Both the position numbers and the translations under genes were made by a program. DNA of 58,400 nt, filler included, from Sluysia triapertura (lineage: Eukaryota), in the NCBI GenBank assembly GCA_046118255.1. It is 4 parts of 4 records of this genome, joined end to end, with 100 filler letters (N's around TTAATTAATTAA, not from the genome) between each part and the next. Parts side by side here need not be neighbours in the genome. Positions count along the whole stretch, not along the records: positions 23,494 to 35,355 come from JBJNIA010162926.1; 3 more parts are not named here. One strand, 5' to 3'. Under the pieces are notes generated by a model. That model did not search any database. It saw only the letters and a program-made list of their open reading frames with translations, and was not told where the DNA came from. Of this stretch, positions 23,494 to 35,355 are shown one piece after another; the stretch's first letter is position 1, and every line of letters starts with the position of its first letter.

Positions 23494-24218
23494 GTTACCT
23501 TATTTAACATTCTGTAATCGCCGCATATCCGGATGTTACCGTCTTTTTTCTTAACGATTTGCAGAGGTGCAGCCCAAGGAGATGAAGATCGTCGCACGAT
23601 TCCTTGTTTTTCCATATCAAGGAATTCCAACTCTGCTTGTGCACGGATTTTCTGTGACAATTCTCTCATGCGTTGTCTGCAAGGTGGGGTTGGGAGAGTT
23701 TTGATAAAGTGCTCTGAGCTAGGCACATACTTCGAATTAAATTGCTGTCGAAGTAATTCGAGATAGGCCTGCTTCACATAAGAAATGACATTTGTTTCAT
23801 TGAGACTCTGTAGGTCAATTTTTATGTGGGACAGTTGTCCAGAGCTTTTGCCTAATGTTTTGGTTCTGCAGTCCACGAGCAGTTTATAATGACTGAGAAA
23901 ATCTGCTCCTAAGATTGGCTGTTGAACTGCAGCTATTGAAAAATTCCATGTGAATACTTCAGCGAACTGGGGTATTGTGAATTTGAGTTGTAGAGAGCCG
24001 AAGCAAGCCACGGTTGTTCCGTTGGTCGCTGTTAGATATGATGGGGTCTGTGTTGTATTTTTAATTATACTATTTGGGATAACTGATACAGCAGCCCCAG
24101 TATCAATTAGAAAGTCCAGTTTTGGGTATTGAGTACCAACGAACGTTAACGGCACTGAGAATATACTATTGATCGCCAGTTGTGTAGGTCGGGCCGCAAC
24201 GACCATTGGCATATTCAG
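23494..24218 (-). CDS. pol: Ty3/gypsy pol, 5' part: aspartic protease and start of reverse transcriptase, cut by the contig end
   Basis: FLIDTGAAVSVIP and ILGADFL retropepsin motifs; SSPWAAPLQIVKKKDGNIRICGDYRMLN is the N-terminal RT motif block. Frame is open. Confidence 0.95.
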
Positions 24219-24224
24219 TTTTTT
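24215..24224 (-). promoter_or_regulatory. -1 ribosomal frameshift slippery site A_AAA_AAC followed by the gag stop
   Basis: TCA AAA AAC TGA in the gag frame; the -1 frame reads AAA AAA CTG AAT ATG CCA straight into the pol ORF. Confidence 0.8.
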
Positions 24225-27200
24225 GATGCCGCGTTAAACGAGTTGAACTGATTACAGCCATCCATGCATCTTTTGGCCAAGTCTTTAAAGTATGCATGGT
24301 AAATACATATATTTTTTATGCGCAGGGTATTGAGTTTATTTGGGTATCTGCACCCTTTTGGCTTTTTGCTGGAACTTGTTGTGATAGTAGCAGATATCGT
24401 TGAATTTCCTAGGATTCCCTGATGATTTTCGTGATATCGAAGATTGTCTTGAATTGTTAAGCGAATTACGTTTGGAAGATACTTTTTCTTGTTTGCCTAG
24501 GACACTTAATGAAAGTATCTTGGTAATTTCGTTCATCTGAGTGGTCAGTGCGTCGATTCTTTGAGACATGGCTTCGAGCACACTATTTGATGTGGCCACT
24601 GGTGATGTATATGTGCTTGTTGCGCCCTGCATCAGATTGACTTTGTCTGGGTGATCGGTACGCCATTGAATTAGGATATTGTCTGCCAAGAGGGCCAGAT
24701 CGTCAATATCCGTGGTGCGACTGACAGCCAGAACTGCCTTGACTATGTCTGGCATTGCGTCGAGGAATAGCCTTTTAAGGACATCATGATTTTCGTCCTT
24801 GTCGCATCCGAATGGGCGTAGATCAGTTTTGATCTTCCACAAGAATTCTGATGGTGAAAGGTTTCCAAGCGATTGTTTCTTAAAATAGTCTTGGAACACC
24901 TTTCGTGTGTCGGGGCGGTAATGCTGCAGTATAACTTCTTTTAAGTCATCATACGCATTGACGGACTGCAAGCAAGTGGGAATTTTGTTGCTTAATTTAG
25001 TCAGGAGCGGTTGCGGCAGGAGCGGTTGCGGCAGGAGCGGTAGTAACTGGTGGAATTTGGCGGTCTGTCTTCGCACTAAATTCCTTTTAAAGTGCGACTC
25101 AACCACCAAAAACCAAGTATTTGGGGACCCGTTTTCATCTGTGAAGAAGGGTGTGTCATAAGATGGGGTTCTCTTTTGGGCCTTATTATCTGCCAGTGGG
25201 TCATCGGCGTCAACATCAGAACCGCCGGGTAACTTGTGTGTGATCGCGATTATAGCCCCGTCAAAAATGCTATAATCGCATAGGGTCAAGTTATCCTGAA
25301 GTGGTTTGGTCTTGTATGAGAACCAAACATCCTTATGATTAGTAATATCATATAGGGTCTTAACCTGAGCCCTAGAGCAGATTTTTCGGGTTATGTTGAG
25401 GGAGCAAGCGACGCATTTTATGTTGATAACTACGGAGTCGTTGCAGTCGTTGTATTCAAAATCGTTGTTGATTATGGTAGGTGTCTTGATTTGTTGTTGA
25501 TGCGGTGTTAGCTTTGTTAGAGTTGTAGGATGTACGCGATTATGAGTTTGGAGGGTTTGTCTGACTGGCTTGAGATGTTGTTTTGGTCTATTGTCGTGAT
25601 TGCCTAAATAGGTTTGTTTGTGTTCAGCTGCAGGTTTGTGTAAAATTTTTAATGTATTGAATTGGGGTCCATTTACGATGTTCTTCTTACAAACCTGAGC
25701 GTAAGATATACCTGGGTTGGAAAGGTATCTCGCTGGCGCCCAAACGCAGTGGGGAACGGGTTTATACGATGGGTTGGTTTGAGGCGGGACCCTAGCGTCG
25801 CCTTTGCGGGGCGTCAGTTTATTAGTTGTGCGCTTTCTTATGGTGTGGGTGGCCACGGCGAAGCCATAGCTGATAATTTCATTATGTTTGTTAGATGTTT
25901 GGTGATGATTTCTAGTGGTGATGTTGTGTGATATGTTATTTTTTGTGTATACATTAGATGATGGAGTAATTTGTGATTGGAGTGATTGATGATTTTTAAG
26001 TTGTACATGTAAAGAGGGTCGGCGCGTGGCCTGTGTAAGACATTTATTAGTGTTGGTAATGTTGGTACCAATGTCGTGTGTGGTTAAATGTTTTTGACTT
26101 GTGCAAAAGGGTTTGTGCATTGTATTTGCGTTAGGTGTTAGATGAGGGAAAAAGTTTTTTTTGTGTATGTTAGGTGTTGTGATTTGTTTTTGTGATGAAG
26201 TGTGTTCAACTTGTCGTATTGGAGTTGTGTGTTTATTAGAGTCTGATGTAATGTTGTTAAGTGTTAATTGATTTGATGGTGCATTAATGGTCATATAGTA
26301 TTGTGTTATGTCTGAGCGAATTTGTCGTAAGTTCTTATTAAATTGGTTGACAAGATGCAATAGATGATTTCTGTCCGTAGTGTCTGTGACAGTGCACTTG
26401 CCAGTGTTTCTTTCCTTGTATGATGTTGTATTAATGGGATTGTATATATTTTGTTAGTGTGTAGTGCCCATTGGACGTGTTTTGGTTTGATGGTATGTTG
26501 CTTAAGATGTTTAGTAGTAGTGTTTTTAATGTTCGAGTTACTGAGTGGTTGAAATATTGATTTAAGGTTTGTCTTGTTAGGTGTAGTTAACACGGGTAAT
26601 GTGTATATTGATGATGGGGGTATGAAGTTGTTATTTGGTATTATGTTTTTACATTTTTGTTTATTTCTAGATGTGATATTCTTGGAAGAGTAGCGTGAAG
26701 TTTGTATAGATGAGTTTGTATTGGTTACGGTAGAGCTGTAAGGTGTGACTTTGTGATTATTTATATAATCCCGTTTACTGTTGTGGGAGGCGATTTTGTT
26801 TTGTTTGTAAGTGTTTAAGTAAAGGTTTTGATGAAATGAATGTGACGTGAAGTCAGAGGTATTTTGTGCATGAAGTTGGTGCGCTTTATCTATTGCACGT
26901 AAATCTTCTGTTGTATGTGGGTATGATTTATGTTTGTTTCTAGTATTGGTTGGTATATGGTTTTGATTGTTAATGTTACTGCTGAAACAATTTGATGTAT
27001 TAAGTGGATGTTTTAAAAATAACTTAAGAGGTTTGAGATGATTTATAATTTGGTTTGAATTTGAAGTAAAGCCGTAATGGCTTGGAGTATCTAGGTTAAG
27101 TACGTTTATATAATCAAAAGTAAAACTAATAAAATTATTGAAATTTGAATGCAAAATTCTACATTTAATTGGGGCTACACTAAGTATGTTCAAATGAAGA

Positions 27201-27378
27201 ACCGTTTTAGTATGAATGTTCGGTTTACGACGAACGATAACGGCTTTTTGATGAGTGTAACCGTAAGGCCAGTTATCAAAAGGACATAATTTATAGATCT
27301 GGTCTAATTTATTGGAATTTAAATTTTTCTTTGTAATAGTAGTGAAAATTCATCTTGGTAAATATGTTTAAAAGGCAT
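24215..27378 (-). CDS. gag: Extended ORF1 of a CsRn1-clade element: low-complexity N-terminus, ubiquitin-like domain ending LPGG, Gag capsid, CHCC knuckles (three frameshifts in this copy)
   Basis: ORFs 26306-27193 and 24336-26360 overlap out of frame. Capsid motif PFF...SPNTWFLVVESHF...KFHQLLPLLP, and LGNLSPSEFL..LFLDAMPDIVKAVL. A C-x2-H-x9-C-x3-C motif at 24254-24307 is characteristic of the CsRn1/Boudicca/Kabuki clade. The start at 27378 is inferred. Confidence 0.8.
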
Positions 27379-27403
27379 TAGAATTATAGTGTTGTCTGCT
27401 TCA

Positions 27404-28700
27404 CTAATAGAAATATGAGGTGTTTTTTTGAAAAGCATCTTCAACTGCGCATTCACAGTTAATACTTTGTGTGTTTGGAGGTAAGACCACGTTTTTGATT
27501 AAACGGATCATTGTTAAGTGTAATATATTAATTTGAAAAATAATTTTACTCCCTATTAATTTAACAATAATTTGAAAATTAGTTTTAGGTGTAGTGCAAA
27601 ATGTGATTTTAAAAATAATTTTGAAAATAATGTTAAAAATACATTTAAAAAGTGCTAAAATTTTAAAGGCAATATCGCCATTCCCAAAAACAGAAGTTGA
27701 ATTGTAAGTGAGATGCCTGACAATGCTTTCCTCCTGACACCATTGAGATGGGCGGCAAGTTATTTTGTTAGGCGTATTAACATTAAAAATTTCTTTTTTC
27801 TTTAATTTCAAATTAAAAATTACAACATTAATGCTATTCAAAAAGAAACAACAAAAACTACAATATTTATTCTGAACTAAACAAAAATAATTTGGAACAA
27901 TAATTTTAGAATTTGTAACGTTGTCAAACATCTCGATTATAGAAACTTCTCGGATAAAAAATATTATAAAAATCATGATAAAAATAGGGTGTAGCTAAGT
28001 TGTCACAATTTGCATATGAATTTTTAAATTCAGTTACACAATTAACTCTTAATTCTTTATTAACTTTATTTCTTAATTCTATGCATTCTTCTAACTGTTC
28101 GTCATTAAATTCTAGACTTACTTGATTGTCACGATTTGTTACTCGAGTACTAAATGAAAAGTGAACTCCTAAATAGTCATGGAAATATAGTTCGCGTTGA
28201 TCCATTATCACTTTCTTCAACATCATCGTCGTCCGAATGATTTCGACCAGGATCACTTATGTTACTATCAATATCAGAATAAAAAATGTCATCTCATGTT
28301 TTGCTGCTGTGGCCACTTTCTTCTGATGCACTGCTTAAGCAATCGTCATTATCGTTGTCGGTATCGGCACTATGTAATTCTTTTGTAGAATTTGTACAAT
28401 TTTTAAAAGAAACATTATCATCATCGTCATCTTCATTATCATCATCGTCTTCTTCATTTGAATCACTTGAAATACGATTTATAAATGAAATATACTCCAT
28501 TTCATTTGCATTTGAGAATCTATTATCGTCTACAATTTCATCATGTTCAGTTTCTTCATCCATTCTAAACAGAGACCAAGGAGAAAATAGTTGAAACTAA
28601 TTACAAAGAATTTAATATTTTAAATTTTTAAAAATCTTACGTTCTTTGTTTTTGATTCAAAATTTATTACTGACCTTGACTTTCTTATCCCATTACGTAG
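27404..28700 (-). pseudogene. Disrupted host-like gene fragment with an acidic N-terminal region
   Basis: ORFs 28294-28563 (D/E-rich), 27924-28256 and 27404-27976 are linked by a stop and frameshifts, with a candidate GT-AG intron at about 28565-28640. Family not recognised. Confidence 0.4.
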
Positions 28701-29659
28701 AAATACAAGAAAATAAATATCATAAATTTGTCAAATAACAATAAATTCGTATGAGATTTATTTGTTAAGTAAATGTTTCAAATCTGATGAAATATAAATC
28801 AAAATTAATATTCTTCAATCATATAGATATATCAGTTAATGAGCAAAAGAACTAATAATAGTATACTACTAAAAAATATATTAATCATAAATTAAAAATA
28901 CAAAAATAAATTTGTAGTTGTAAATAACAATTAAACAAACAAAATATTACGTACAGTCATACCTAAAATATCAAACATCATACAAAAGATTGTGTAAATT
29001 TTGATAAATCATTTACATTTTAACCAATACGTAAAATAACAAAATTATGCATGTTTTAATATAATAATATAACATAAAAAATAACTCAGAAGTATTTTGA
29101 TACAAAATGTACAACTCTAAAGAAAATAATTTGAAACCAAACAGTTAGATAGATATACTAAACTCAATTATATTATGAATAATCTTTAAAATATTTATAA
29201 ATCTATTACTTAATTTTTATATATAATTTAAAATTAATAAATTTAAATAAATTTAATATCTTTGAATTAACTAATTAGTTAATAATTTATAATTTAATAT
29301 TTGTATCAAAAATAACATTGTCTAGTTAATTTAAAATCTTCACAAAATTCAAAACCATACAGACAATATACATGCATGTTTGTTAAAATGAAGTTACTGG
29401 AAATGGCTATTAACGATGAAAATGCAAACGGATAAAAATAAAAATAACAACTATACATAAGTATGACAAAATAATGATTTTGAAATGTAACTTATTTCAA
29501 AAAATGAAATAAAAAAATATAAAATACAATAAAATATGATATAGTATAAAAGTCGAGTATAGATAACTGAAGGAATACACGATTGATAAAAATTAAAAAG
29601 TAGTTACAAAATTTAAATCGCATTTTGCTACTATTTTTAGAACAGCCATTATTATTAAT

Positions 29660-30310
29660 TCAATTTTTATGTAAAGCAGAATATGAATAATCACGATAAT
29701 TTTGATTGTATTTAAATACATCATCATGATAATTAAATTGATTTAAAGTATTATGTTCATGATCTAAAGATGGAGTTTTAGATAATTCGTTGAATTGTTC
29801 ATAATTCAAAAAATAATTACCATTGTTAAGATAATCATTCGAAGTCCTATTGTTATAATTTGACCAGATGCTGTTATTGATCATAATCAATCCTTTTATA
29901 TTACTATAGTAATTTCTTTAAAAAGCAAATTAGAATAAAAATACAAATTGATTCACTAAAGCCAATGTACAATAAACTGACAAATACAATCATATATCTA
30001 TTGAAACACAATCTATGATTTGCCACTCCGCCGATAAAGAACAAGAAAAATTAAATCAGCTTGAAGATACAATAAATGTTAAAAATACGAAAGTTACACG
30101 AACACTTAATAACTAAATGATTAAACTAAATAAATATGCATCCGAATCAATTGAAATCAAAAGAACAGCAATCACATGATATATATAGTTTTTATAAGTA
30201 ATAATAAAAAATAAAAGGAGAATGCAAAAATTAACACTATGATGGTATATTTGGGTAGAGCGATATTGGCGGATTGAAGTGTTAATTTAACTGAATTACG
30301 TTGTATTTTA
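29660..30310 (-). pseudogene. Frameshifted membrane-protein-like fragment
   Basis: Hydrophobic segments (e.g. YMIVFVSLLYIGFSESICIFILICF) lead via a frameshift into ORF 29660-29890. Confidence 0.25.
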
Positions 30311-30630
30311 GCTAAAATGTATTAATATTATATATTTTAAAATTGATAATATGTCTGAAGTATGTTATATTTTAAGTGTTATTATGAGTGAACGATGTGG
30401 CAAGGTGTCGTGTGTATTGGATGTTTGTGCATGCGTATGTTAAGGGTTAGTGACTGAGTTGAACACTACAAGGTAGAAGCATAAAATTAATCATATTGCA
30501 AAGAGTTTCATACTGTTTCATAAGTATGGGAGTCAAAATGATTAGACGCAAAACGGATATGAAAATATTTTAAGAAGTCCTTTGTTTATTAGTTTATCGC
30601 GATACTATGTTAAATGCAATATTTATTATC

Positions 30631-31291
30631 TGTGTTATGTTAGGTTGTCAATATAACTCTGTAAAATCATCTAAAATGCTTTAAAAATCTTTTAATACCT
30701 TTAAAATTACTTTAAAAATATTTTCTAAAAAAGAAATTTATTTTCCAAAAAAGAAAATTCGCTTCTCAGAATAGAATAGAAGCTTCTAGAATGTTCGAGA
30801 ACATTCCATCGATTCTCATTGGCTAGTATATAAAATCCTCCATATTGTAAAATCATCAATTTTGGAGAATTTGTGAAATTTTAGTAATCGTTCTCAACAT
30901 TTTCGAAATATCCGCCGATCGATATTTATCCATATTCCTTCTAATAAATTTATATATTTTTAAGTTCAATTTCAACTTTAGAAGTTGAGATAATAAAATA
31001 CATGTATATTTTATAATACTTTATTTTATATTACTTTCTAAGTCCCCGATATATTGAGGGCTAATATTTACTTAAAATATTTTTGTTATTAGATTAAACG
31101 TTATCGGAGCTTTAATCATTAAAATAATTATTTTTGTCTTCTTTTATTTTACTACTACTATTATTATTAGAATTTGTGTTTCATAAATAAAGTTAATATT
31201 ATTTCCTTTATTTAATTATTAAGTTCAATAAATTATTAAAGTTTTTGAAAAAATTATACTTTTGAGCATTTGTTAAGACCATAACTACACA
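30631..31291 (+). repeat. Probable solo LTR
   Basis: TGTGTTATG ... CATAACTACA imperfect inverted termini, TATA box at 30827, AATAAA downstream, and a GTCCCCGAT motif shared with the LTR at about 15363. Confidence 0.5.
30778..30835 (+). promoter_or_regulatory. Heat-shock element (six alternating nGAAn pentamers) plus TATA box
   Basis: aGAAgcTTCtaGAAtgTTCgaGAAcaTTCc at 30778-30807; TATATAAAA at 30827-30835. Confidence 0.75.
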
Positions 31292-31975
31292 ATATTTATA
31301 TTTATATAGTCATAGGAACGCCCTCTTTACGACATAAGACGTTTACTGCTCAAAAATATTTTGCCGTAGGTTAAGTATTAGAAAAACCAAAGCAGTTATA
31401 TAAATAGACTGAAATGTTTAATATTTTTGATATAGCACCCTCAAAATCAATAAATAAATGAAGGAGAAATGTACAATTATGAGTTGTAAAAAGGAAAAAA
31501 TAAAAGAAACTGTTACAGTCATTAATACCCTTTAAAAAAGGTCCACGACTAACACAACCAATCAGCATCAGTCAATGATGCATTTTTGTTTCAGTGTGTA
31601 TTTATTAATAAATTTTATATATGATATTGTTTTAAATTCGTATTTTTTCCATTTATTTAAACCTTGATTCAACAAAATAAATAAATAAGATGTAAAGTAA
31701 AATGGCACTCTTCAAAATTTTATTTAAATTTTCACATCATTGACCAATTTACTTCAACCACTTAAAGATTATATAGTAATTATGTGACTTTTTGAAATAG
31801 TCTGCAAGCTGTATCATTTTGATAGTTACATAATAAATACATTTGTAAAATTATGGCGATTTATAAATATAGATTATCAAATTTAAATAATAAATAAAAA
31901 TAATAATTTCTTTTTTATTAAAAAATTAATATCGCTTTTTAATGTTCAAAATAAGATACTCGTTCAAGAATTATA

Positions 31976-32029
<54 letters not shown>

Positions 32030-33044
32030 CAATGTTAACAACAATTAGACATTATAAGCGGATACAGTAAAAACATATTTTCATCTTTCAAGATCAGACA
32101 AGCATCAAATTATATATTATCTTTGTATAATTATGTAATCAATTGAATATTAAATGAGTTGTATTTTTTGATATAATTAGTCGTTCAGCAATCGTTTAGA
32201 TGAAAATGGTACAGATGAACAATTACATTCGTATTATTAGATTAATAAATGCTTAGTTTGATTAAATTTGAGGTAAATTTGTATGTTTAAAGAGATTTTT
32301 TGCAAATAAAAGATCTTTAGTAAAATATATTTTGCCTTTTTCATGTTTTGCTTTGCGTTCGCGGTTTTTTTATTTGAAAAGAATTATTTTTAATGTGTCG
32401 TATTTTTGATAGTAATACCTTGGTACATTTTTTAAAATTTCTGTTATGGAATGCTTTGTTATTTTGTGTTTTCTTAAATTTCCATAATAAAATGCAAAAT
32501 TTATCGGCAAAATCTCAAGTAAAAACATTTAATTAAATAAAAAAATTACAAATGAAGATAACGAATATTTTGGCGGAAAAATTCATGCGAAATGAAGATT
32601 ACAACGCATGTGCGAAATTAATAATAAAATCGAAACTTTATGTTAAGACATTACTCGTATTAAAAATCGTATTGAAAAATTTCAATATGGAGTAGACAAG
32701 TTGGGATGCGAAAGGCACAGATTATGAAAATATTTAGAGACTCAATTAAAGCAGACAAAAGAACAAGTGGATAACTTGGAAATTCTCTCGATAGAAATTA
32801 ATTAAATTATCGAACAAGTTCGAGAAGTCGTTAAATATGCATTTAAAAAGGACCACGCATTTTTATTTTGTTTTTATTTATAAGTGATGTTATTGAAGTA
32901 ACTTTTTGGTAAACCTTAAGTATGGTATATACTAAATAAGCATTTGTATTAAGTGATCAAGAAGCTGCTCCCGAAAATGACTGAATTAAAAAATGTCTCA
33001 CCTACAACCAGACATGAATATACTCATTCGAATTAAAATCTAAA

Positions 33045-33645
33045 ATGCTAAAAGGAAACTATTATAGATTGTCCCGAAGCACCGAATATTGTTAGAAAGT
33101 TCATGACAAGAGCTAATGTTGATAAAAATAATAAATTGCTAAATTAATGAATCGTAAGATTAGTAGCTGAACACCAAAAATTTTAAATTAGTACATGACA
33201 AAAACAATTAATTTTGCTAAAGAATAAGATTTACAAAGAGAGATAAACTGTCGTCGATTGAATTATCTCGAGTATCCTTATAAATTTATTGACTTTGTGA
33301 ATTCTGTTAATTTGTTTGTTTTGACATTATCAGTTAAATGAAGTATAAATCAGGAAACGTTTGGAACAGCGTACTTTAAAAGTGGTTCAGAAACGCATCT
33401 AAGCATTTTTTTGGAATTAATGGATTTGAGGCCTGTTGAATGTTTCGTTTTAACAGAAATTAGTCATGGCAATTAAAACAACAGATGAATTTGTTTTACA
33501 TACACCAAAAGTAATTTGACCAAGTATGTTATTCTCGACATAGTGTTTGCTCGACTTATAATGTTGTGGTTTTATAATATGATTTATTATTGGAAACATG
33601 GATCCTAAAATTGCACTTAATGGTTTTGACAATGGTGCTATGATT
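33045..33645 (+). pseudogene. ACOX3: Peroxisomal acyl-CoA oxidase (ACOX3-like) pseudogene, N-terminal part
   Basis: Motifs in the expected order: QREINCRRL, FGTAYFKSGSETH, CFVLTEISHG, DEFVLHTP, IGNMDPKIALNGFDNG. They are interrupted by stops, frameshifts and internal deletions. Confidence 0.75.
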
Positions 33646-34580
33646 AATATTCATTAAAGTCGTGCCATCTCAGATTACTGTCTCATATGATATCCGAGCT
33701 CTTATTCTGATAATCATAGTAATAAATGTTTTATTCGAACTTTACTAATTCATTTTAGGTGTTCCTTAAGATAGATATGCATTTTTTAGTGTTAAAATAC
33801 AACATTTTTATTCGTAAATTTAATATATCATTAGTTCATTGTTGTTTTTCTGTCTTCAAGGAAAATTATAATAATATTTAAGTTTATTTCAATAATTAAT
33901 AAATTAATTATAGTATTAAGTTATTACTTTTGTAACAATATAAAAACTGTTTTCAATCACACATGTACACAATGCATGTATAAAACAAAATTACATAAAT
34001 AAGTCGGTATAAAAAGTAATATTTACAGTCCATTGTCGGGTCAGCCGCGACATTGCAATCTTTACGTTCCGGTCATCTGTCCGGTCTAATTTAACATAAA
34101 CATTGAAACGTTTGCGTAATTTGTTATATGTCGAAGATGGTCAGATAAGAAAGTGTGTACTTTTGTATTTTTATTATTCCTAGGCGTTTAATTGTGAAAA
34201 TGGTGTGTTGTCGCTAAAATTAAATAGGACCGCAAATGGTTAACAAATACAAAATCTGAAATATAAATCTATGTGACAATAAAGCTCCTTGTAACATTAA
34301 TGTGATATAAAGGATTGTAGTTAAATACCTTTATAACATTTTCTATGGAAATAGAAAGAAGTTGGTAGTTATATTCGAGCTAAATCAACGATCTAATCTG
34401 TTGATCGTTTTCTGTTAGAAGAATGAATATTATTATATTAAATTTGTAATTGGTGATAGAAAATTGGAAATGATTTTTTGGAAAACTAGTTTACTCGGTG
34501 GATCGAGTTTATTCGTAATTATTTAAGTAACCAAAGTCCATTTTAATAATTGGTTATCAGAAAAATGCGTCACGTGGCAC

Positions 34581-35355
34581 TGTAAATAATATCATCCTAA
34601 TGATCACAATATTGAAAAATTTGTAAAAAATAATAATAAATAATATTATTAAATCACAATTTATTGTAAAAAATAATAATTTTTAATTTTATTGTAAAAA
34701 ATTTATTAAAATTTTATTATATTTATTGTAAAAAATAATAATAATCTTGTAAATAGTCATTAAATAATAAAACGGATGTATATTGTTATTTCAAAAAATT
34801 AGAATATTTATATTATAATCGGTATTATCATTTATAAATAATTATTTTATTTATATTATAATCGAAAAATTAATAACGAAAAAGGAAATTTACAAACGGA
34901 TATTTATTTAAAATATTTAAAACGAGATACATTATAAATCTTTATTTATATTAATAATATTATCAACAATCAAAAAGGTTCAACAATCAAAAAGGTATAT
35001 ATAAAGGTTCGAATTTATTAGTATCGACACAATAATTATTAGACGTGAAACGTTCAGGTTGCAAGGAATTTTTAGGAGAAGACTATTAATTGTTTGGATA
35101 CAACGAGTTCAATTTTCATATTTTGGTACAAATTATAGATTTGGAGAATATATTTTGGTTCAAATCGCAATTATCTTCAATTGGTTTCCATCGCATTCAT
35201 TTGGTTCAGCTACATCTGATAGGAAATTGGAATACGAATCTATCAATTTAAAATTTTTTAGTAAGCTTTATTTGTTAGGTTACCGACCATATTATTTGGT
35301 CTTAAAATATACGTAAATTTTCTCATAATATTTTCTAAGTAAACCCAAAGGTACC
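34581..35355 (+). repeat. Possible LTR truncated by the contig end
   Basis: Starts TGTAAATAAT, has an AT-rich U3-like region with internal duplications and TATATAAA at about 34998. Confidence 0.35.

Follow-up and report, generated by a model that had tools for sequence, protein, structure and literature searches.

Polyproteins encoded by long terminal repeat (LTR) retrotransposons and retroviruses are generally regarded as processed by the aspartic protease of the element itself. Linear fusions of ubiquitin or a ubiquitin-like domain (UBL) that end in Gly-Gly (GG) are cut by cellular deubiquitinases, as in UBA52, RPS27A, FUBI-eS30, Sde2 and the ubiquitin inserts of cytopathic pestiviruses. 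Among mobile elements, the giant Gypsy-like Burro elements of planarians contain an Ubi2/SUMO-like motif (PF11976) among their accessory domains (PMC6431247). Here we analyzed 58,400 nucleotides of Sluysia triapertura DNA (assembly GCA_046118255.1; four parts joined with filler, the whole called the window below), in which the minus strand of the piece at 23494-35355 (JBJNIA010162926.1) holds the 5' part of an LTR retrotransposon with a UBL ending in GG directly upstream of Gag. The sequence comparisons are best explained by an LTR lineage that captured a copy of a ubiquitin gene and fixed it in frame between a translated 5' leader and Gag. Host deubiquitinases probably cut after GG and free Gag and Gag-Pol from the leader-UBL; the cleavage, the enzyme responsible and the selective reason are what we infer.

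Translation of 25221-25433 (minus strand) gives the 71-aa segment claimed in the first-pass annotation, ending in KLPGG and lying within the open reading frame (ORF) 24336-26360. When its last 37 residues are aligned without gaps to ubiquitin 40-76, exactly the 11 identities counted there are obtained. This is the best ungapped ubiquitin match in the whole ORF, and the same level of identity (outside GG) was reached by only 33 of 200,000 composition-matched shuffles. The segment alone matches the Pfam ubiquitin family PF00240 with 20.2 bits (E 5e-4), below the cut-off of 25.4 bits, and a PDB sequence search with it returned 47 weak matches, every one of them to ubiquitin, ISG15 or NEDD8. Built from 29 diverged homologues, including the window copy and deliberately excluding near-canonical ubiquitin copies, a profile matches monoubiquitin at E ~1e-12 to 1e-13, and its positions 12-85 align to ubiquitin residues 2-76 from end to end; 11 of the 29 copies individually match Pfam ubiquitin at E <= 0.01. 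The ubiquitin-like fold that had been predicted was obtained in an AlphaFold2 model of the segment built with the family alignment (predicted local distance difference test, pLDDT, 80.6). The top 50 PDB matches of this model in Foldseek are all ubiquitin or ubiquitin-like proteins (ubiquitin, ISG15, NEDD8, SUMO) with template modelling (TM) scores of 0.6-0.7. Its first two strands are of uncertain register, as the alignment was poor over the N-terminal half of the window segment, and the single-sequence AlphaFold prediction (pLDDT 39) is uninformative. The segment combines a beta-grasp fold, profile homology over full-length ubiquitin and a C-terminal GG at G75-G76, and judged from homology and the model it is a diverged ubiquitin homologue that ends exactly at the position of ubiquitin G76.

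To our search with UBL plus Gag (HMMER, 1.84 billion representative proteins), 1573 Gag relatives responded, and in the best matches the alignment extends back into the UBL. Among the best 150 of the 1573, which were inspected by anchoring on the Gag N-terminal motif and the UBL profile, at least 33 clusters (50% identity, near-duplicates excluded) carry a UBL whose GG end lies 15-49 residues ahead of Gag. Scanning metagenome contigs with a subclade alignment brought in 21 further loci, and wherever the UBL profile matched, the UBL ends in GG. A homologous-protein search returned no match for the window protein and one protein for the 22-sequence alignment. All of the relatives come from metagenome or read-set assemblies. 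The conservation of the segment and its GG in other copies, on which the first-pass annotation had staked its claim, is borne out: the architecture is conserved and GG is invariant. These copies also bear on whether the fusion is a chance juxtaposition or assembly artefact, such as a host ubiquitin pseudogene beside a decayed element. The window copy is indeed decayed, and its UBL falls below the Pfam threshold when searched alone, but the same in-frame layout recurs in 33 or more protein clusters and in 21 independent contigs that come from several samples, so that the comparison refutes this explanation and we give it a negligible probability.

The module is restricted to one part of the Gag tree. 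In a tree of 135 representatives, 25 of 25 rows with a UBL fall within one side of 36 rows (Shimodaira-Hasegawa-like approximate likelihood ratio test, SH-aLRT, 96), compared with 0 of 99 rows on the other side. Eleven rows of the 36-row side were scored as lacking a UBL; four of them are truncated at the N-terminus, two are basal and have no UBL, and two are unchecked. L006 (P0025; L006:106-1008) is truly without UBL and leader, its Gag motif lies 20 residues on, and its gag ATG overlaps the junction of LTR and primer-binding site (PBS), a layout that may be the ancestral state or a loss. The distribution fits one gain of the UBL near the base of the 36-row group with rare loss. Two other scored absences were only apparent: P0014 has a UBL tail, cut but ending in GG, and P0015 has a UBL upstream with in-frame stops.

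Within the module, conservation is concentrated at the C-terminal end. In an alignment of 32 UBLs (mean column identity 23%), the two glycines are the only invariant columns, and in the 22-sequence UBL plus Gag alignment GG is invariant together with nine Gag residues, including a zinc-knuckle Cys and His. GG ends 47 of 47 distinct tails, with L, I or V at position -4 in 46 of them and R or K at position -5 in 41. GG is followed by Ser in 25 tails and otherwise by N, T, M, G, A, D, V or Q, never by Pro; GG followed by a residue other than Pro, the pattern of linear fusions processed by deubiquitinases, is conserved across the relatives. Of the 39 diverged copies (less than 50% identical to ubiquitin), every one retains G75 and G76, 38 have L, I or V in place of L73 and 33 have R or K in place of R72, and the buried core positions remain hydrophobic. 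Ile44 is replaced by Thr, Ser or Cys in 32 of the 39 and Val70 by Asn, His or Ser in 26, the lysines of ubiquitin are not conserved, and outside the conserved positions the UBL changes faster than Gag. Going by these alignments, the fold core and the R-L-x-G-G tail are retained while the Ile44 recognition patch is lost, a pattern that we would expect for a domain selected to be removed and not for a working ubiquitin.

This pattern also bears on the suggestion of the first-pass annotation that the freed leader-UBL-GG acts as a functional product, which would either be conjugated as a modifier or disturb host ubiquitin pathways as a decoy. The cut would leave a free GG end, R72 is R or K in most diverged copies, and recently captured copies are still ubiquitin-like. 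Nevertheless, the Ile44 patch and the lysines are not kept, which argues against activation by E1 and conjugation, Val70 is mostly polar, unconserved leaders of 45 to ~770 residues would stand at the N-terminus, and the rest of the domain evolves faster than Gag. The suggestion does not hold up against these points, and we consider such a role improbable.

Some relatives carry a module close to ubiquitin itself. The UBLs of P0158/P0019, L011, P0004, L015 and L010 are 61-78% identical to ubiquitin, compared with 14-34% for the other copies, and they keep Ile44, His68 and RLRGG. P0158, P0004, L011 and L015 are nested in a well-supported Gag subclade (100/99), while the Gag of L010 is too short to be placed in the tree. 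In the rest of this subclade the module is diverged and has derived features in common, among them the deletion of one residue and the motifs FYL[ST] and NFR, which are also found in distant subclades. With starred support, L011 (76% to ubiquitin) is sister to L013 (26%) and L015 (65%) is sister to L016-L018 (24-27%), and each near-canonical copy is nearer to ubiquitin than to the other near-canonical copies. Since the near-canonical copies are nested among diverged modules, an old module was replaced by host ubiquitin at least once. There may have been more than one recapture, since an approximately unbiased (AU) test of whether the near-canonical elements form a single Gag clade gave a borderline result (p 0.049), for a group that was defined once the tree was in view. 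At the position of the ubiquitin initiator Met, the near-canonical modules have Ile in three cases, Phe in one, and Met in L011 only. On the sequence comparison, the renewal is a natural swap experiment, in which selection appears to keep any ubiquitin fold that ends in GG.

The swap is relevant to another explanation, that the UBL is an uncleaved, integral N-terminal part of Gag, like the UBLs of Rad23, Ddi1 and parkin, and docks to the proteasome, ESCRT or shuttle factors. The conserved fold is compatible with it, and there are parallels: Ddi1 is a cellular protein that pairs a UBL with a retropepsin-type protease, and ubiquitin fused to a retroviral Gag can substitute for the late domain. 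However, integral UBLs rarely keep a terminal GG, which is present here in every distinct tail and at ubiquitin position 76. The Ile44 patch, used by proteasome receptors and most ubiquitin-binding domains, is lost, and a swap to plain ubiquitin, which cells readily cleave from fusions, is tolerated. We regard an integral UBL as unlikely, although it is the least unlikely of the alternatives to cleavage by host enzymes.

In the window, the element runs on the minus strand from 5' to 3' as putative LTR, PBS, leader, UBL, acidic linker, Gag and the start of pol. Its features are as follows (all on the minus strand).

27743..28038: putative 5' LTR; the 3' end is fixed by the adjoining PBS, the 5' boundary is tentative.
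27731..27742: PBS TGGTGTCAGGAG, an 11/12 match to the tRNA-Leu(CAA)-type PBS.
25434..27730: leader of ~2.3 kb, once one continuous reading frame according to the stop maps.
25221..25433: UBL of 71 aa with the end K-L-P-G-G, from ubiquitin homology and the modelled fold.
25221..25226: Gly-Gly codons, the predicted deubiquitinase cleavage site, with Ser next; invariant across relatives.
25149..25220: acidic linker of 24 aa from GG to the Gag core (15-49 aa in relatives).
24339..25148: Gag capsid-like region of the Pfam DUF7041 type, starting FFTDENGSPNTWF (DUF7041 E 4e-6; 1573 Gag homologues).
24354-24392: first CHCC knuckle (partial), inside the Gag capsid-like region.
24217..24353: Gag C-terminal tail in another frame, from three-frame translation against intact relatives, which have two knuckles in one frame.
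24254-24307: second knuckle CX2HX9CX3C, complete, in a different frame from the first.
24217-24219: gag stop, in the frame of the displaced tail.
23494..24212: start of pol (aspartic protease and beginning of reverse transcriptase, RT), from the ORF and weak retropepsin Pfam matches; it ends at the edge of the piece.

The 3' LTR lies beyond the piece, so the LTR boundaries are tentative; the 5' LTR may start with a TGTAAC-like sequence at 28038, which resembles the LTR starts of L001, L008 and Steamer-like elements. The capsid motif FFTDENGSPNTWF, which had been placed about 23 aa past GG, in fact begins 24 aa past it. ORF 24336-26360 does hold the UBL segment, but its 3' end is shortened by a frameshift and the leader is far longer than this ORF implies. 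The gag frame is broken at ~24339-24353 according to three-frame translation, and the leader contains a single frame change between 26309 and 26455 and four stops within a 55-nt patch (27352-27406). With these lesions, the window copy is decayed and not itself functional. Besides, a perfect 15-bp tandem repeat of 2.7 copies at 25002-25041 in Gag encodes LLPQP repeats and looks like a recent small duplication in this copy.

In L001 and L008, an LTR of ~170-240 bp that starts with TGTAATAG is directly followed by TGGTGTCAGAAG. This sequence is complementary to the 3' end of tRNA-Leu(CAA), as taken from a probe sequence (PMC7997516), and serves as PBS in Steamer-like Mag C elements too (PMC8905726). 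The window PBS differs from the 12-nt TGGTGTCAGAAG by a single mismatch among the last three bases, as in Steamer-like elements. An earlier PBS candidate near 25742, beginning TGGGCGCC, was rejected, as its complement is without T-arm-like sequence and the better match lies at 27731-27742.

Across the LTR/PBS junction, at 27741-27743, lies an ATG in the frame of the UBL, followed by a leader of ~770 codons. The same PBS, likewise overlapped by an ATG, is also found in L001, L006 and L008. The junction ATG is in the UBL frame in L001, L008, L017 and L029, the nearest in-frame ATG is within the LTR in L004, L013, L021 and L022, and in L003 the start lies 17 codons upstream of the UBL. From PBS to UBL in 15 loci (2017 codons), we counted 6 stops in the UBL frame and 129 and 211 in the other two, and the 6 stops are confined to L003 and L015. 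For the window copy, the frame is open at 27996-27407 and again at 27351-26309, and the UBL frame is open from 26455 onward, while alternative frame paths contain 58 and 64 stops; the open runs of 279 and 328 codons exceed those in all 2000 Markov simulations. Since the UBL frame is kept open from the PBS to the module, a leader peptide is probably translated upstream of the UBL. The stop counts of the 15 loci and the stop map of the window agree in this respect with the long leader before Gag that the first-pass annotation had proposed.

The leader itself is not conserved. In the window it is of low complexity and rich in N, T, S, K, H and Q, and it showed neither a Pfam domain nor similarity to other leaders nor internal repeats, and comparison of the leaders with one another gave no similarity overall. 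The 815-aa leader of P0018 has no PDB relatives and a marginal Pfam match, and it is slightly similar to the P0026 leader. The coding strand at 25470-27200 of the window is A/C-rich with 7-10% G, open for hundreds of codons and almost without ATG, and the GC skew of the plus strand is 0.43-0.61 between 25494 and 26993.

Several relatives have host coding sequence in or before the leader. In L008 (L008:555-2134, P0016 residues 1-540), the leader of 535 residues from PBS to UBL consists of a captured host gene: LRRC47 (PDB 6zxd_k, E 6e-20) is matched by residues 190-441, collinear from near the LRRC47 N-terminus and in frame with UBL-Gag. L008 also shows the pol end, the polypurine tract and the LTR upstream of the PBS. 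In L030 (L030:258-3248, P0030), a single ORF runs from an N-terminal region like DIS3L1 (residues 45-364, E 7e-26) through a PBS-like TGGTGTCAGAAG at residue 367, ahead of which no LTR is obvious, and a CNOT1 CAF1-binding fragment (437-542, E 1e-18) to UBL-Gag. Upstream of the PBS and outside the element, P0053 contains a histone H2A fragment (residues 12-115) with the UBL frame open through it, and the N-terminus of P0001 (L005:1-140) contains a fragment that is HSP90-like by eye, without a Pfam match, in the same open frame as the UBL. The upstream fragments of P0053 and P0001 may be insertions into host genes or read-through contigs.

In the pol of the relatives we found RT, RNase H and integrase families only, and neither deubiquitinase nor cysteine-protease families, so the host must make any cut after GG. 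An alternative is that the element's own aspartic protease cuts the junction and that the ubiquitin fold is a folded spacer only. Retroelement polyproteins are normally self-processed and a retropepsin is present, but a retropepsin is not known to require a ubiquitin fold or an L-x-G-G tail, and the invariance falls exactly on the processing site of ubiquitin, so that we rate this a shade less probable still than a modifier or decoy role. In the relatives, gag and pol are overlapping frames and not a single ORF, and intact relatives have two CHCC knuckles in one frame. L001 has two nearly identical copies with UBL-gag and pol intact, which by sequence points to recent activity; ORFs for UBL-Gag that are naturally intact lie at L001:114-1607 and L003:476-1612. 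Between these two copies and L002, UBL and gag are identical and all 6 differences are in the leader. L001 (L001:1-10324) and L021 are head-to-tail tandem elements that share LTRs (LTR-internal-LTR-internal-LTR), and the identical coding regions in the L001 tandem are a sign of recent activity or recombination. The L004 assembly is circularly permuted, with a terminal overlap of 141 nt.

As for the neighbourhood of the element in the window, the surrounding DNA is very AT-rich (~17-31% GC beyond 27500). The flanking ORFs at 27404-28594 and 35059-35316 gave no matches in a Pfam search, and the piece was scanned for Rfam families and tRNA genes, with none found. Upstream of the element, at 27924-28594, short ORFs without Pfam match encode very acidic peptides rich in Asp, Glu and Asn, which may be host exons, and a 21-bp repeat lies among them at 28413-28465.

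Taken as a mechanism, host processing would proceed as follows. Translation would begin at or just upstream of the PBS, and the ribosome would pass through the variable, unconserved leader and the UBL into Gag, with a frameshift giving Gag-Pol. Host deubiquitinases would recognize the ubiquitin fold and the R-L-x-G-G tail and cut after the second Gly, which would remove the leader-UBL during or after translation and expose a new Gag N-terminus, usually Ser-Asp, separate from the leader product. The module would then act as a separator powered by the host, through which the region with the PBS and probable RNA signals could be translated without burden on the capsid protein; in some relatives, it would also let captured host coding sequence be translated. 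Starting from an ancestor like L006, with its gag ATG on the PBS, a cleavable module would let the interval between PBS and Gag grow with the capsid unaltered. Release of Gag and Gag-Pol by a host deubiquitinase, as suggested in the first-pass annotation, is the mechanism best supported by the fold, the invariant GG and the translated leader, and it keeps the standing of a probable interpretation.

A number of points weigh against this reading. The cut after GG is one that we infer. The Ile44 patch, which many deubiquitinases contact, is lost in the diverged copies, and the tail of the window copy carries Pro at the position of Arg74. The window copy is broken by the leader frame change, the stop patch and the gag frameshift, and as there is also no in-frame ATG near its UBL, it is uninformative on expression. 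L003 and L015 probably start nearer the UBL, so the long leader is not universal. L006, a member of the clade, lacks the module and yet has an intact gag start. Finally, the relatives are known only from metagenome or read-set assemblies.

A further extension of host processing, which we offer tentatively and think somewhat less likely to be right than wrong, is that the module is a general linker for cargo release, in which any insert between PBS and module is translated and cut off by the host, and the module is refreshed by recombination with host ubiquitin mRNA when its decay goes too far. If so, the clade could lengthen its leaders and express captured sequence, such as the LRRC47-like stretch in L008 and the CNOT1 fragment in L030.

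If cleavage by host enzymes is true, a clade of LTR retrotransposons leaves its first cut to host deubiquitinases, which would be a second, host-dependent route of processing and a fixed, heritable counterpart of the sporadic ubiquitin inserts in cytopathic pestiviruses. The elements would provide a natural series of ubiquitin folds selected only for cleavage, where the need is the core and R-L-x-G-G and not the Ile44 patch. They would clearly illustrate how one and the same host gene is captured repeatedly at a single site, and the module may explain how the primer-binding and leader region can be translated. For annotation, ubiquitin matches in such repeat ORFs are real domains, not contaminating host sequence or host ubiquitin-fusion genes.

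Compared with known retrotransposons, the element shares features with two groups. The "CsRn1-type" label given to Gag at first holds for the CX2HX9CX3C (CHCC) signature as defined previously (PMC2582038), but not for the PBS, which is of the tRNA-Leu(CAA) type shared with Steamer/Mag C and not of the tRNA-Trp type. Like the CsRn1 clade (CsRn1, PwRn1, AgCR), our elements have a CHCC Gag, and their gag/pol overlap is in the -1 frame, as for several AgCR elements, whereas the PBS of CsRn1 matches tRNA-Trp and no UBL is described for CsRn1. With the Steamer-like elements (Mag C, Ty3/gypsy) they share the same 12-nt tRNA-Leu PBS directly after a short LTR, putative in the window, that starts TGTAA, although gag-pol is one ORF in Steamer and no UBL is reported there. 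Burro is the nearest mobile-element precedent, with a ubiquitin-like motif inside the polyprotein of an LTR retrotransposon, but that motif lies downstream of Gag in an ORF1 of 4,873 aa, and neither GG processing nor clade-wide conservation is described for it.

Among ubiquitin fusions, the genes UBA52, RPS27A, FUBI-eS30 and polyubiquitin similarly have a GG-ended fold fused in frame to a downstream protein, which cellular deubiquitinases free, and the residue after GG is not Pro; a corresponding cleavage is probable here. In our elements, by contrast, what lies downstream is a retrotransposon Gag or Gag-Pol, the UBL follows a translated leader, and the UBL surface is decayed, so that free ubiquitin is probably not a useful product. 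In cytopathic pestiviruses such as bovine viral diarrhea virus (BVDV), host ubiquitin is likewise captured in the polyprotein of a replicating RNA element, and host enzymes cut after GG to make the N-terminus of the next protein, as we propose for Gag. Pestivirus inserts, however, are sporadic recombinants in persistently infected animals, while the module here is fixed in an LTR clade and was renewed at least once. Sde2 resembles it in having a strongly diverged UBL that serves mainly to be removed at GG, exposing a defined N-terminal residue, but Sde2 is a cellular factor in splicing and replication and has no connection with mobile elements. A full-text literature search found no published UBL-Gag fusion, in keeping with the initial impression that the architecture was undescribed. 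In conclusion, the ubiquitin fusion processed by host deubiquitinases is already known as a kind, and what is new is that it is set in a retrotransposon Gag, has become fixed in a clade, is recurrently renewed and is coupled to a translated leader.

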